A stretch of DNA of 63,971 nt from Octopus bimaculoides (lineage: Eukaryota). Where the stretch lies: contig NC_068993.1 of the NCBI RefSeq assembly GCF_001194135.2, positions 14,042,288-14,106,258 of the forward strand. Direction: 5' to 3'. The position numbers and the translations under genes were made by a program. Of this stretch, positions 5,570 to 61,550 are shown piece by piece; positions within the stretch are counted from its first letter, which is position 1, and the number at the start of each line of letters is the position of its first letter. Below the pieces are notes generated by a model, which worked only from the letters and a program-made list of their open reading frames with translations, was not told the origin of the DNA and made no database searches.

Positions 5570-5716
5570 CTTCTTTCTTTCTGTATTCCATTCTGCGGAA
5601 GAGCGTAGGCTCGAAACGTTAAAGACTCCTTCACTTCCCGAGTGTTAAACGAATACATCTGTTTGTTGTCTACACCACCTGCCTTCGTCGTTTGTTCTTT
5701 TGTAAATTCTCCCCCT
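5570..5716 (+). mobile_element. Hammerhead-bearing ~150-bp repeat, copy H1 (Penelope-like pLTR/retrozyme-like)
   Basis: Contains CATT-CTGCGGA-A-GAGC-GTAG-GCTC-GAAACGTT-AAAG at 5589-5624. Homologous to five other copies in the window. The 3' end abuts (TATG)n. Confidence 0.7.
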
Positions 5717-8700
5717 ATGTATGTATGTGTTTGTATATGTATGTATGTATGTATGTATATATGAATGTATGTATGTATATGTGTGTGTGTTTGTGTATGT
5801 ATGTATGTATGTATGTATGTATATGCATGAATGCAATAATTACAACGTTAAAATATAGAGTTTACAGCGTGATTGACTATTCTTAGCAGTCATAGGAGTT
5901 AAATACAAATAGATGCGCCCGGATTATATATCCCTCTAACGAGACACACGTGCGCATCCGAGCAGGTACACACGTACATATATGCATTGTGTGTGCATAT
6001 GTGTGCATTTCTATATTTTTTTGTGTGTGTACGCGTGGAAACAGGCGTGCACACTTATATACATCTCTTTGGGATTAGATACATATGTAAACGGTTAAAT
6101 AGCAATTAAAAAATATAGACGCATAACAGCTGCCCATATGAATGCGCCAATCTACGTATAGAATTATGGGTATGGGTTTATGATGTGGTTTTGTTTTATT
6201 GGTGAATGTATCTAAAGTTTCGAATGGAAAGTTTACTTGCTTGCAACATGAAATGAGCTGTTTTTACGTTTAGCATAATGTGAATGCTGAAGAGGATTTT
6301 GAACTCTGAGATGAACAGTGAATATCGTTTGGAAGTTAGTTTGTAAGAACTTTTCTAAACTGTATGTTTCAGTCATTTAATGCTCAAACGTCATTCGGTC
6401 GTCTATTGTATAAATGTTGCATCTCAAAAATAGACCGTACTCATATATCTAAATTTTAATCAAAATAGATTTTACCATATACTTATCTACCATCAACATA
6501 TGTATACGTTGTCTACATTAAGTGTTACTAGTAAAACAAGAAATATAGAAACAAACTTTGGAAAACATACCACACGCTCAGTCGAACATTGCCCGCACCC
6601 TTTCAATCCGTACATATAACATCTCATATCCATTTCTAAAATTTTACTCGAAACGATTTTTCCTGAACTCTGACGAATCCACTCGTCGCTATGTGGTAGT
6701 CACCAATTCTAACAATATATTGTTGTACAGCGAAATTGTTCGCTTCTGTCATTCAAGCAGTACATAGTATTTCCATACAATATATACATAGACACATTAA
6801 ACTCGCACCCCCACATATATATGATATAGATAAGTAGATACAGATATACATGTAAACTTGCACATGTATATGTATGTGTATGTATGCATATATAAGTATA
6901 TACATATATATGCAAACACACACACACATGTATGTCTATGTATATACATACATATATTTACATACAAACGTACAGTCATGCATATATGAACACTTGTTTG
7001 CTTATAAATTCTTGTCTGTATCTAGATGTGCACTTTTAAATGAAAGCGAGTGGAAGTAGTTTGAAAATTATTGCTGAATAAAGAAGATACGTCTGTTATT
7101 TCCGAGAATTAAATTTGCATCAAATGCATTAAAAAGTGTTTTATTTGTTTTAAAGCTATTATTCTACCATTGTGGTCATAATGTAACATTTAAAGGAAGC
7201 GGATGGCTATGCCGCATAAAAATGAATCAATATATGAGTGGAACTAGTTTTATACAATTTCATTATATCAACATATCTTTGTTTCTTCTACATTTTATAG
7301 AATCGGAAAGAGAAAACAGAAATATAGAGTGTAATGGGTGATGAAAGAAATAGAAAACGAGAACAGAAGAAGAGGGAATGAGGATGAAAGAGAAATGGAA
7401 AATATATCGAAAACCTGTAGGGTTAAAAATAAAAATAAAGCTGAAATAATATAAACCAAGCGTATAATAAAGGTTTCGCTGAATTTGAAATGTCAGTCCT
7501 TATGTGAGTCATTTCTGCAAATACACTTGACATTCTCAGACAATTCCGAACGAAATCATTCTAAACTCAACTATGAACATTGATATAAATTTGTTTATAC
7601 TTTGTTGAACACTTGTTGGGTTCAATATACGTTTTCATACTTCAATTCTTTCTCTTCAAACCTATCTATCAATATTTTTCATATCATTTTATGTCTATGT
7701 TTCTGTATATTATATTTGAATGTATTACGAATTTTAACTGGTTTAGCATAAATAACTTCCTCGCTAAATCCTTTGCAGACATCCGCATTGTCTGTTATAT
7801 AAACTTGGCAATATACTTCGAAAATTGTGTATACGAATTCTGATATATATCATTTATTGCTTCGTGTATATCTCATGTATTTTATGCTCTGTTATAAACA
7901 TGTATAAAATAATCAAATATCTGCGTTTGTAGGGGATTTTATATGTATAAATTCTCGTTTCTATTTCAAATGGAGAGTATGAAATTTTAACATTAATCTG
8001 AAACTTAATACTTTTAAGTAGAATGCATATTTAAAATTATTTACATGGAAAGGTCGATAGTAATTTCCAAAATTTCGAATTTTTTGCCTACATCAGTCAT
8101 CCGAAACTTTAAAGTAATTGTCACCTCTCTTGTCATAAGAAGATGAGAGACAGTGGTTTCGAAGATTCAGTCGGCTAGCCTTCGGGGTGGTTCCCGTCAG
8201 TAATGAGAGGGATATCGGCATATGCAGGTATATAAAATAACACAACATAAATTCGGGATTTGTTATAACTATCTCAGCCACGAGACGATACCTCACATAT
8301 ACCAAATACCAAGTGAGAGCAGCTCCCACTAAGAAGGGGATATACTCTCAAGAATCAAGTATTCTTCGCAGTGAAAATACTGTAAAGCAAGAAGGCAGGA
8401 ATATTGACTGGTAGCAAGAGAGCAGTCGAATTTTTTTTTTCTGCCTCGATAAACGTCATCAACATTTCAATTTTCTTAACGTTCCTTTAGAAACCAAGCA
8501 ACACACACACACATACACACACACACACAAACACACACACACACACATGCTCACACACACACACAAATATGTATACATATGCAAAAATAATGAAACAATT
8601 ATGGAATGAAATAAAGAAAAGAAATGAAGAAAATGACGTAACTGAGTGTGCAATGCCGTGTATCGGGTATCAATGATATATTTCGTTTCATTCCAATAGT

Positions 8701-8831
8701 ATTTGTATTAATATGAATGGATCTATTGTAGTAATTTATCGTTTTGCTTGATTTACTCCTCCTCTTCAAATTGTCTTAACATCTTTTTTTATAAATAAAC
8801 CCGAATATATATGTGACCACTTTGGAGACAT

Positions 8832-9400
8832 ATGAAAATTGAGAACCAAGTAGAAAAAGAAACGACCTTTTTTGACCTCTGTTATTTTTTTGCGTCACCG
8901 AATCTTCCAAAGCTGCTAAATCCATTCAAAACGTTTTACTCTACACTTACTGAAAAAACTGCAGAGAAATGCTTTTCACATTTCAAAAATTGCTCAAATT
9001 CCGACCGATTTGATCAGTTGAGTGAAAATCGATATACTGAGCACATCTACTAGGGATTTGGCGCTGCTGAACGGTTTATTCTCAATCAATGGATGATCCA
9101 GCTGAATCGACCAGACCGATAACACGGTGTACTTTTTCAACACTACAATGCTTGCCAGCAAAAGTGCTATTCAAAAGCTTAGTTGGGAAATTCTACCACA
9201 CAAACCGTATTCTATTGATATAGTGCCTTCATATTATTATCTTTTATGGTTACTTTCCAAAAGTCGGGGAGGCGTTTTAGATCCGAAGATATAGCTCGAT
9301 GAATTCTTCAAGTCAATATTTGGTGGTTTTTACCAACAAGACATTGACAGGTTATCACGTTGTCGCAATCGTTACAGGCAATTATATTAGTGAGTGGTGT
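8832..9400 (+). mobile_element. Mariner (Tc1/mariner) transposase remnant, internally deleted
   Basis: N-terminus MKIENQVEKETTF…TLTEKTAEKCFSHFKN resembles the mariner HTH. Later frames give QHYNA…WEILPHKPYSIDIV, matching HDNARPH…WEVLPHPPYSPDL. Multiple stops and frameshifts. Confidence 0.75.
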
Positions 9401-9409
9401 GTTAAAATT

Positions 9410-59441: not shown

Positions 59442-60491
59442 AAACACATATGTATAAACGCACACGTGTGAGCTATAGGTAGCAATTCCGCAACACAAAA
59501 TGGAATGATACACTTCACCGAGAGACAAAGTTTACAACTTCTGAAATCATCCCGATTGTAATTTGTTTTCTATCAATGATATATGGCTCATAAGTTTGTT
59601 AAAATTCTCCTTTTTTAATGTTCATACATCTTTAAATAATTTCTGACGTCTAAATATATACATACACATGTGGTTGGATAAACTAAAGGGTGTTATAATT
59701 ACTTGAAGAAATATTTTGGTGCTTCTACTTGAAATCTATCTATTGCTATTCATCTTATGTTTTGAAACCTCTAGTACGATCTAGTGGGCACCATTTCCTT
59801 TGAAAATACTTCCAGAAAACGCAAACGTGGATTGTCCCCTTGTTTTATGTTTACAACTCGCTAATTGGTAGAAACATTGTTATTTTCAGTCGTAAACACA
59901 GCACCAGATGGTCGCCCACTTCAAAATCTCACAAGGATCTAATCAAACAAAATAATGCCCGTTAAAGCGTTACTGCCGTTTCAAAGTGTTAAAGAACGTA
60001 TATACTACATATTAGTAAACTATTATTGATACGGTAGAAACATATTTTGCAACATTTGTTTCTGTATTGTTGCTATTACGAATATAAGTGATGTTCTGTA
60101 AGTAACGACTATCTAAGAACTAGGAGCTAATTTGATGTTTCATTATTATAATGAGCTGCCTGATTACTCTTATTTCCTGCCTCGGGAGAAATTGTATAGG
60201 TGCTAAAAATTGTTTTTATTCTATTTATGATCGTTTTCTATAAGAGCAATTCTTAGCAGTATATAAATCGAATGTTATTCCTAACGCTTTAAAAATATTA
60301 CCTTTATTAGAATAGACGAATATTACAATTTAACAATATTCATTTCGAAATTCAGTTCCGTTTGTAAGAGACCATATTTCTTGGCAACTACGCTTGACAC
60401 ACAAATATAGCAAAATAGCTAATACTTGTGACGTGTAGCGATAATACTAATATATGAAACATTATTAGAAACATAACTTCTATATTTCTAG

Positions 60492-60604
60492 GAACATTAG
60501 CTGCTTTAAAGGCGGTTGAACTCCTACTAGATATATTTACGAAGGAACTAATGTCTATATTACAGAAATTGATGAAACGTAGAGCTTCACGCCGCAAAAG
60601 ATGA
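60492..60604 (+). CDS. Candidate terminal coding exon of an unidentified gene: (G/R)TLAALKAVELLLDIFTKELMSILQKLMKRRASRRKR*
   Basis: Pyrimidine-rich acceptor CATAACTTCTATATTTCTAG|G. 36 open codons after a phase-1 start, giving an amphipathic helix-like peptide with a basic tail. No recognised homology. Confidence 0.35.
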
Positions 60605-61391
60605 AAAGTATTATGTTAACTGTTAAGAAAGAAAGAATCTATTTGTTTCTTCTAACTATTATATATATATCACTACATACATTGCATTTGCATTTGGGAA
60701 ATTAATTGTACGCTTCACTTAACGATATCGAATCAAGATCGTCATCCATATTATAATATTAACAATAATATTTACTTCTAAGTTAATAGAATGACATACA
60801 TTTAGAGATATCTTGGCTTAGTAGATGTGTCTGATATTTTAGAGGGGAGAATGGTATTTGATGATTTCGATATTGCATGTACTATTTTTTTTTTTTTACT
60901 TAGCGCTTAAGTGACAGTGTATTTCACAAGTACAAGAGCAGTGAAAGTAATTATGAAAGGAAATCACCACAACTAAGTGAAACAAGGCTGGGTAAATTCC
61001 ATCAATCTGGCTTGTGCGGTGTTTCCCTCTACCGAGTGCCATTGAGAATGTATTAGTCAACCAAGGAAATCAATTTATGCGAAATGGACGTAAACATTTA
61101 AGGTTCCTTAATTATAAGTCACATACACACACACATATATACACACGCACAAACACATACATATATATATATATATATATATATATATATAGTGAGCGAG
61201 AGACAGATATATGTATATACATATATATATATATAAAGAGAGAGAGAGAGAAAGAGATAGATAGATAGATAGATAGATAGATAGATAGATAGATAGATAG
61301 ATAGATAGATATATAGATAGATAGATAGATAGGTAGGTAGGTAGATGGATGGATGGATCGATCGATGGGTGAATGGATGGATCGATGGGTA

Positions 61392-61550
61392 TAGTTCAAA
61401 TGTATAAGCAAGAAAGAGACGAAGACAGGTGAAGGAAGAAGCTGATGTATTAGTTTAATACTTGGGAAGAAAAGAAAAGTCTTTGAGGTTTCGACCTTAC
61501 GCTCCTCGACAGAAAGGATTGAGAGGGAAAGAATGGAGAGAGAAAAGAAT
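61392..61550 (-). mobile_element. Hammerhead-bearing repeat, copy H6 (decayed)
   Basis: Minus strand reads CTTT-CTGTCGA-G-GAGC-GTAA-GGTC-GAAACCTC-AAAG. Ends next to a (GATA/GATG)n tract. Confidence 0.6.

Follow-up and report, generated by a model that had tools for sequence, protein, structure and literature searches.

The minimal hammerhead ribozymes of Penelope-like elements (PLEs; Cervera & de la Pena 2014, PMC4209133) are type I motifs in which one base stays unpaired between positions 9 and 10.1, G10.1 pairs with C11.1 and the 15.2-16.2 step is palindromic. Their helix I has 4-5 bp and their helix II 6-8 bp, they are mostly solitary with some opposite-strand pairs 100-700 bp apart, and they cleave just weakly in vitro (PMC4209133). 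The elements themselves are recognized by a preference for (TA)n targets, by copies truncated at the 5' end and by their inverted or tandem arrangement (PMC8557442), and Penelope elements are present and active in Octopus vulgaris (PMC13282606). Animal non-LTR (long terminal repeat) retrozymes (PMC5680766; bioRxiv 10.64898/2026.07.22.740005) are short (51-972 bp), PLE-related, non-autonomous units with type I hammerheads and are defined by tandem arrays and abundant circular RNA; the proportion of monomers in a retrozyme family ranges from 0 to 1, that is, up to 100% monomers (bioRxiv 10.64898/2026.07.22.740005). Here we describe a short dispersed repeat family that carries a 36-nt hammerhead-like motif in a 63,971-nucleotide stretch of the Octopus bimaculoides genome (GCF_001194135.2, contig NC_068993.1, positions 14,042,288 to 14,106,258 of the forward strand), hereafter the window, whose coordinates are used throughout. 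Our tentative explanation, in which we place slightly less than even confidence, is that these are non-autonomous retroposons mobilized by a PLE, with a conserved core that derives from a PLE-type minimal hammerhead and is a feeble self-cleaver at best.

A profile built from the copies recovered exactly six family members in the window (E 1e-42 to 1e-47), at the six places named in the original prediction and with none expected by chance; nothing else scored below E=0.7. The 19-mer GAGCGTAGGCTCGAAACGT occurred five times at 3 or fewer mismatches compared to 0.00 expected from shuffles, and the sixth copy, 33084-, is a G>A-decayed form (GAACGTAGAATCAAAATGT). The unit had been put at ~150 bp and measured 190-215 bp, 151 bp being the length solely of the 5'-truncated copy at 5565. 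Pairwise identity among the copies was 65-75%, with the exception of 5570+ and 49760+ (85%). The window contains 17 N-runs (~5.1 kb unread), none of them inside or adjacent to any copy and the closest (5464-5473) lying ~90 bp before the point where homology begins in 5570+; these gaps therefore bear solely on the count and the density, which was 6 copies per 58.8 kb of read sequence. The copies and their motifs are as follows.

Copy 1 (5570+), 5565..5715, + strand: profile match 5515-5722; 5'-truncated, without the ACCACTAAAACC... leader; its 3' end, TTCTCCCCC, leads directly into (TATG)n.
Motif of copy 1, 5589..5624, + strand: CAUU-CUGCGGA-A-GAGC-GUAG-GCUC-GAAACGU-U-AAAG; position 6 is C (5596), H17 is U (5620), predicted cut between 5620 and 5621; one stem I mismatch (CAUU/AAAG).
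Copy 2 (29503-), 29504..29688, - strand: profile match 29495-29687; near full length, with TA repeats on either side.
Motif of copy 2, 29583..29618, - strand: CUUU-CCGUCGA-A-GAGC-GUAG-GCUC-GAAAUGU-A-AAAG; C4, U6 (29611), H17 is A (29587).
Copy 3 (33084-), 33085..33262, - strand: profile match 33076-33284; decayed; its 3' end adjoins a (TA/TG)n tract and its 5' end adjoins the 5' end of copy 4 (head-to-head).
Motif of copy 3, 33168..33203, - strand: CUUU-CUGUUGA-A-GAAC-GUAG-AAUC-AAAAUGU-A-AAAC; G>A changes have wrecked stem II and G12.
Copy 4 (33310+), 33266..33461, + strand: profile match 33274-33470; near full length; ends in TTTGAAA, then (TA)n.
Motif of copy 4, 33345..33380, + strand: GUUU-CUCUUGC-A-GAGC-GUAG-GCUC-GAAACGU-C-AAAG; 5' core broken (CUCUUGC), with G5, G8 and A9 gone.
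Copy 5 (49760+), 49738..49911, + strand: profile match 49729-49920; inside a (TA)n tract; a member of the youngest, most abundant subfamily.
Motif of copy 5, 49786..49821, + strand: CUUU-CUGCGGA-A-GAGC-GUAG-GCUC-GAAACGU-U-AAAG; position 6 is C (49793), N7 is 49794, H17 is 49817, predicted cut between 49817 and 49818; within the conserved island 49776-49825.
Copy 6 (61392-), 61394..61584, - strand: profile match 61385-61587; near full length; 3' end TTTGAAC, then TATACCC(ATCG/ATCC)n; separated from a neighbouring remnant of a long interspersed nuclear element (LINE) by unique sequence (read depth ~0).
Motif of copy 6, 61481..61516, - strand: CUUU-CUGUCGA-G-GAGC-GUAA-GGUC-GAAACCU-C-AAAG; U6; one mismatch each in stem II and in the ACGU palindrome.

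In hammerhead numbering the consensus motif reads CUUU (helix I), C3 U4 G5 U6 N7 G8 A9, an extra A, GAGC-GUAG-GCUC (helix II), G12 A13 A14, A15.1 C15.2 G16.2 U16.1, H17 and AAAG (helix I). Helix I (CUUU/AAAG) and helix II (GAGC/GCUC, closed by a GUAG loop) have 4 bp each, and helix III is merely the 4-nt self-complementary ACGU, which needs a second RNA for pairing. An extra base lies between A9 and G10.1 in every copy with an intact core (A, or G in 61392-), the G10.1-C11.1 pair and A15.1/U16.1 are found in 6/6 copies, and GAAA in 5/6 (33084- has AAAA). The 15.2-16.2 combination is C-G in three copies, U-G in two and broken in one, and read counts genome-wide gave C15.2 in ~92% and G16.2 in ~90%. 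Across the six copies 73% of the cells of helix I and 88% of those of helix II were paired, the mismatches in stem II falling in 61392- and 33084-. The shared string that had been reported, CUUU-CUG(Y)NGA-A-GAGC-GUAG-GCUC-GAAA-CGU(H)-AAAG, is thus present as described, although individual copies deviate from it. The likeness to PLE minimal hammerheads comprises type I topology without a real helix III, the palindromic ACGU, the unpaired base at A9/G10.1, the G10.1-C11.1 pair and the short helix I. It extends to thousands of mostly solitary copies, an opposite-strand pair (33084-/33310+) and the low or absent activity expected of a monomer.

These PLE-type minimal traits fit the assignment to a type I hammerhead made in the original prediction, but the invariant A6 of the ribozyme is broken, a departure that passed unremarked in the CUG(Y/C)NGA given there. 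Position 6 was C, C, U, U, U and U across the six copies and never A, compared to the invariant A of PLE hammerheads, and the canonical core C3-U4-G5-A6-N7-G8-A9 occurred in no window copy. A strict minimal-hammerhead descriptor was passed by 49760+ alone, provided that a pyrimidine was allowed at position 6; this pyrimidine-6 descriptor had 0 matches in 20 Mb of composition-matched random sequence, a test that bounds that specific descriptor alone. Genome-wide letter counts from two read samples on 49776-49830 (~10-12 thousand reads per count) gave U 92.2%, C ~6% and A 1.7% at position 6. Neighbouring C>A and A>C changes stood at 1.1-1.3%, and since A at position 6 is near this transversion background, a non-A base at this position is taken to predate the amplification of the family.

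The same counts showed that variation was distributed unevenly around the motif. Within an island of ~50 nt (49776-49825) strong diversity was confined to position 6, position 7 (G 37, U 38, C 19, A 5%) and position 17 (U 51, A 38, C 10, G 1.8%). The remaining island sites were at most 10% variant, mainly through CpG transitions, with U4 at 7.5% A and 2.7% C, whereas at least 17 sites in the next 70 nt outside the island exceeded 10%. Sites 7 and 17, which vary freely, are the pair of unpaired core positions at which a hammerhead tolerates change, G being avoided at 17, and the unpaired G8, A9, G12, A13 and A14 were invariant. The conservation peak of the six window copies coincided with the island, and read depth rose two- to three-fold over it, which indicates that subfamilies with different flanks share it. 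Source elements would then have kept this module near-unchanged as their flanks diverged, which argues that the module was needed for propagation, and we infer that they were selected to keep it. Separately, a conserved block, CTAATACAYCTGYTTGTTG, lies at 49848-49866, ~30 nt downstream of the hammerhead-like core, with equivalents in the other copies and a mean pairwise identity of 0.73-0.77 among them.

We compared the ends of the copies and their surroundings. All six 3' ends (TGTAAATTTCAAC or GAATTCTCCC) lead directly into simple repeats, against a background of 2% per end, and the repeats differ between copies: (TA)n, (TATG)n, (CA/TA)n and (ATCC/ATCG)n. In two cases, 29503- and 49760+, (TA)n flanks the copy at either end, a sign of insertion into the tract rather than of a templated tail. 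The association of the 3' ends with simple repeats is in keeping with a mobilizer that is either Penelope-like or a microsatellite-specific long interspersed nuclear element. At the 5' end a common leader (..TCG.CTAAAACCACA..T-run..) is reached by four copies; 49760+ starts slightly later, and 5570+ is short by ~45 nt. Genomic reads seldom extended past either end of the unit, and the 5' end was fairly defined, which marks it as a short non-autonomous element and not the tip of a long one. An earlier proposal that the copies are solo pseudo-LTRs of a PLE is not borne out by units of this kind, short, non-autonomous, bounded fairly sharply at the 5' end and with no continuation as a longer element.

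The TA that follows every 3' end, together with the TA repeats before two of the 5' ends, could also suggest a miniature inverted-repeat transposable element of the Tc1/mariner type targeting TA dinucleotides. The ends show weak inverted similarity (in 33084-, for example, TAAATTTACAAG close to the 5' end and CTGTAAATTTCAAC at the 3' end), but these likenesses were short and not the same from copy to copy. It is the 5' ends that vary or are truncated, the 3' ends being fixed; the two strands differ strongly in composition, and no transposase remnant was linked to any copy. We consider this explanation extremely improbable.

The arrangement of the copies was mostly solitary. No tandem copies of the family were found in the 64-kb window, and tandem arrays, which had been suggested as a check, were represented in the reads by just two or three among thousands: one sample had 2 DNA reads with a head-to-tail junction among ~6,000, and another had 3 reads among ~8,000 in which two cores stood 78 nt apart. 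Copies 33084- and 33310+ stand head-to-head, and their arms are 66% identical, no closer than unrelated copies; we rejected this pair as proof of a single PLE-type event on that ground. The octopus units share with retrozymes their short non-autonomous type I design, and retrozyme families may likewise be largely dispersed monomers. They differ in having no array in 64 kb, RNA that is not enriched and a non-canonical core. The Naiad/Neptune PLEs, found at (TA)n (PMC8557442), and the Dong/R4 LINEs, which are active in O. vulgaris (PMC13282606), show the same (TA)n-type insertion, 5' truncation and obscured target duplications, but they are autonomous, several kb long and carry open reading frames (ORFs), compared to a non-coding unit of ~200 bp. 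Because A6, a PLE link and tandem arrays were each looked for and not found, we file the family neither as a PLE minimal hammerhead nor as a retrozyme, although it is probably most like, and descended from, PLE minimal hammerheads or the monomeric derivatives of animal retrozymes.

Taken as non-autonomous retroposons served by a PLE, the copies would be elements of Octopus of ~200-215 bp whose sense strand is probably T-rich and which may integrate 3'-end-first into (TA)n-type microsatellites, sometimes with 5' truncation. The mobilizer acting in trans would most likely be a PLE reverse transcriptase with a GIY-YIG endonuclease. The ~50-nt island would hold a module derived from the minimal type I hammerhead of Penelope elements, in which the self-complementarity of ACGU could pair two RNAs to form helix III. 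Position 6 has been a pyrimidine (U, less often C) throughout the amplification. With a pyrimidine at this essential position, the motif probably self-cleaves very poorly with Mg2+, if at all. We consider a weakened or repurposed relic more likely than a functioning ribozyme, and possible roles for the module are recognition by reverse transcriptase or another protein, or RNA dimerization through ACGU. The data show the family itself, its abundance, its association with microsatellites, the conserved island with its letter frequencies and the lack of a cleavage signal in RNA; that a PLE serves the family, which strand is sense and what the module does are our inferences.

Several observations weigh against this explanation. 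Positions 7 and 17, which vary freely, are also unpaired in a plain-hairpin model of the motif. The stems hardly vary, and the lack of covariation thus neither supports nor refutes the structure. By our own estimate, once one core mismatch is tolerated at any position, the probability that some repeat in the library of a genome looks alike by chance is not negligible. Helix II, with 4 bp and a tetraloop, is shorter than the enlarged 6-8 bp helix II of PLE minimal hammerheads, and where many covarying families were described for the latter, this is a single non-covarying family with no reverse transcriptase or GIY-YIG link in the window. The (TA)n-type targets, 5' truncation and inverted or rare tandem copies shared with PLEs are not exclusive to PLEs, and at 66% identity a single complex insertion event is not demonstrable for the head-to-head pair. 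The orientation is unproven: richness in A, usual for the sense strand of a retroposon, is found on the opposite strand, where T-runs are also fewer, and RNA reads were strand-symmetric in two RNA-seq runs.

The absence of a mobilizer belongs with these points. The suggested check for an association with reverse transcriptase or GIY-YIG genes found none in the window or linked to any copy. The window had no long ORFs other than low-complexity ones or ones with X from gaps, Pfam searches of ten candidate ORFs gave no match reaching the cut-off, and regular-expression scans of the window found no GIY-YIG pattern and a single YxDD match, the YADD at 18995, which was rejected as a reverse transcriptase on inspection.

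We next considered whether the motif might cleave despite its core, as a working hammerhead with a natural pyrimidine-6 core that cuts in vivo after GUH and so processes the RNA of the retroelement, using two nearby copies or ACGU-paired RNAs and perhaps favoured by Mn2+ or helper proteins. The pattern of freedom (any base at 7, non-G at 17, the rest fixed) is as a functioning hammerhead predicts. There is also precedent for C at position 6, in that the hammerhead of phage Bcep176, which is A6C by nature, and an A6C mutant made by engineering both show good cleavage with Mn2+ (Perreault 2011, PMC3088659; Naghdi 2020, PMC7151607), and 5570+ and 49760+ carry exactly the CUGCNGA core of the phage ribozyme. 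PLE minimal hammerheads are themselves weak in vitro. The phage motif is, however, a bacterial-virus ribozyme with full helices, and C6 is found in just ~6% of octopus copies. A6C hammerheads are up to 10^4-fold worse with Mg2+ than with Mn2+, and changes at position 6 give low activity (PMC7151607, PMC3088659). For the U6 present in 92% of copies we found no precedent of an active natural hammerhead in the literature.

RNA-seq data likewise gave no sign of cleavage. Two runs showed no pile-up of molecule ends at the predicted site between 49817 and 49818, and the RNA/DNA depth ratio was flat across it (0.37, 0.40, 0.40), a comparison sensitive to cleavage only when it affects roughly a fifth of the molecules or more, with both strands equal in the reads. 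Neither the RNA ends anticipated by the original prediction nor a dip in coverage was thus observed. Its other RNA signature, a circular junction, was not seen either, in that neither run, from libraries not enriched for circular RNA, contained a back-joint at the ribozyme site. The family RNA/DNA ratio of 0.37-0.40 was near the range of other repeats (0.04-0.37), an abundance ordinary for a repeat. Together with the lack of an Rfam match (below) and the rarity of the tandem or paired copies that a dimeric ribozyme needs, these results make in vivo cleavage by a pyrimidine-6 core improbable in our judgement.

Two further features of the RNA reads were seen. A joint going back 28 nt at 49757-49784, in which the T-rich leader is duplicated with 3-4 extra T, was present in ~20 reads per RNA run, in both runs, but was missing from the DNA reads of the sample; a single, highly expressed copy at another genomic site is its probable source. 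At 49802, the first base of the GUAG loop, G>A reached ~27% and ~24% in the two RNA runs compared to 9-10% in DNA reads. This is the wrong direction for A-to-I editing; a subset of copies with the CpG-decayed loop variant is preferentially transcribed.

Structural searches with hammerhead covariance models, as had been advised, gave no support. No Rfam match in the whole window reached the gathering score, and at E<=10 there were 242 matches, the 150 listed including no hammerhead family. Those 150 were microRNA families on TG/TA-rich simple repeats and one snoRNA, all far below gathering scores; the sub-threshold mir-297, mir-466, mir-3149 and mir-1277 matches, e.g. at 71-142, 6867-6933 and 32996-33068 (at most 54 bits compared to gathering scores of 81-100), are taken to be artefacts of the simple repeats. 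The copy at 49740-49920, searched alone at E<=10, matched none of 4227 families, though genuine minimal hammerheads, too, may escape models built around a real helix III. Covariation in stems I and II, another proposed check, was not seen: among the six copies 0/11 pairs changed on both sides, with values not above those of shuffles, and genome-wide the stem variants were low-frequency, one-sided transitions. Single-copy folds were no more stable than shuffles in 4/6 copies. The U6 consensus is predicted to prefer a closed hairpin (U4-G16.2, G5-C15.2, U6-A15.1) to an open three-way junction, at -9.8 compared to -7.4 kcal/mol for helices I and II only, and a hypothetical A6 form would lack that hairpin.

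This predicted fold bears on a different explanation, in which the family is a short interspersed nuclear element (SINE)-like element mobilized by a microsatellite-specific LINE (e.g. Dong/R4), the island is a hairpin recognized by the reverse transcriptase and the hammerhead likeness is coincidental. The best fold of the consensus is indeed a plain hairpin with a GA-rich internal loop, and A6, an Rfam match and covariation are all missing. Microsatellite-specific LINEs are established, and Dong/R4 LINEs target microsatellites. In O. vulgaris, Dong-R4 is the most active LINE group and there are hundreds of unclassified SINE families (PMC13282606). Another retroposon in the window also ends in a microsatellite, the (CATA)n at 61660-61676. 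On the other hand a large coincidence would be needed, as the ordered and spaced motif elements (CUG.NGA, an extra base, G10.1-C11.1, GAAA, a palindromic NN, U, H and a helix I) were matched nowhere in the 20 Mb of random sequence described above, and G8, A9, G12, A13 and A14, all unpaired, are invariant. No LINE with the same 3' end was seen in the window, and the tails, (TA)n, (TATG)n and (ATCC)n, differ between copies, as if the targets had been chosen and the tails not templated. We therefore consider LINE mobilization with a chance motif unlikely, though a more serious contender than cleavage in vivo.

That copy 61392- might be the 3' untranslated region of the nearby LINE-like ORF remnant (61985-62242, - strand) was rejected: the high-copy 3' end of that LINE stops at ~61665 with (CATA)n, and since 61590-61650 between them is single-copy, 61392- does not belong to it. 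The high-copy repeat itself (61665-61800, depth ~1,100 at >=80% likeness) lies downstream of the ORF remnant and has its minus-strand end in the (CATA)n tail (61660-61676). The ORF remnant has two relatives, the best named being an O. vulgaris hypothetical protein, and the 35-kb loci of these two contained just one further decayed copy of the hammerhead-like family. Similar ORF remnants (..IPIILGALG..) occur in the region 16.3-17.0 kb (16332-16995, - strand), with no Pfam match at cut-off.

The orientation of the element raises one more explanation, that the reverse complement is a SINE transcribed by RNA polymerase III (Pol III), with the A-rich strand as RNA and the hammerhead-like string lying without meaning on the non-transcribed strand. 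This strand is A-rich and C-poor, with few T4 runs except TTTT near its end, and carries an internal A-run whose length varies, after which comes a short unique tail, whereas the proposed sense strand has T4-T7 runs in the first 70 nt of most copies that would stop Pol III. It also contains GTTTCGAGCCT, which resembles a B box (GGTTCGANNCC) at 9/11 positions. This site is however located inside a stem, its TTCGA within a 4-bp stem and not a T-loop, and ~100 nt from the 5' end of this strand, and ARAGORN found 0 tRNA-like sequences in the family and so no tRNA-like head. Moreover, the invariant, microsatellite-flanked end would become the 5' end and truncation would be at the 3' end, the opposite of target-primed reverse transcription. 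We regard this explanation as very improbable.

The octopus tRNA-derived SINEs (Ohshima & Okada 1994, cited in PMC10886601) are likewise short, dispersed, high-copy retroposons of the same genomes; they have a tRNA-like head and a Pol III B box (GAGTTCAAATTCC), compared to neither in the hammerhead-like family. Copies of such a tRNA-type SINE with the B box GAGTTCAAATTCC lie in the window at 44790-44950 (+) and 45490-45660 (+), with related stretches near 43214-43463 and 52010-52207. Their read depth of 2,700-3,500 at >=95% likeness, in a read sample of ~0.6-fold coverage, points to a younger, tighter family than the hammerhead-like one.

The abundance of the family was estimated from the same raw-read sample (X21, 1.93 Gb; ~0.6-fold over single-copy parts of the window). 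At >=80% likeness ~4,500 reads fell on the 55-nt core, which corresponds to ~7x10^3 copies, and two further read runs gave ~1.7 times more copies, uncalibrated. The family as first described, dispersed and abundant, is therefore confirmed, with six copies in the window and on the order of 10^4 recognizable copies by read recruitment as a lower bound. The order of 10^5 first projected was not reached by this recruitment. Extrapolation of the window density would give ~3x10^5 copies, and the excess reflects either old copies evading recruitment or local enrichment in this microsatellite-rich window, where 122 simple-repeat loci make up 5.4% of the read bases.

Outside this genome, one decayed family member was found in O. 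vulgaris chromosome OX597824.1 (20126-20241 of the examined locus), so that the family is shared within Octopus, and it was also present in the reads of related species. Read runs labelled with five related species had sequence words in common with the window. Exact scans for GAAGAGCGTAGGCTCGAAAYGT gave 0 matches in metagenome contigs and 0 in viral contigs, and a 53-aa antisense translation of the element, searched against predicted proteins, gave no candidate. In the literature, full-text searches with motif substrings found no paper, and searches for cephalopod hammerhead-like repeats found none beyond a count of Rfam hits in giant squid.

Apart from the family, consensus read overhangs at 49816/49824, 44774 and 45591 (agreement up to 0.85) defined a 28-nt perfect palindrome, GGTTCGTCCATCGATCGATGGACGAACC. 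Its overhangs stand beside several different repeat families, indicating that it is very abundant in this genome, and it was absent from the window at 3 or fewer mismatches. Related strings, CCATCGATCGAT, follow the 3' end of copy 61392-.

Whichever explanation holds, the family is a distinct microsatellite-associated repeat worth classifying in octopus repeat libraries. If it proved ordinary, it would caution against calling hammerhead-like strings with one core deviation ribozymes on sequence alone. If cleavage by a pyrimidine-6 core in vivo were true, the best-studied small ribozyme would gain a functional core of a new sort, and a retroelement family would be found to rely on it. Should the module descend from a hammerhead of the Penelope type, an amplification to ~10^4 copies would have proceeded with nearly all core bases fixed except the essential A6. 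On one reading this would mean a selected role other than self-cleavage, which bears on what hammerheads do for Penelope-like elements; on the other, position 6 may tolerate more change in vivo than one would expect from decades of experiments in vitro.

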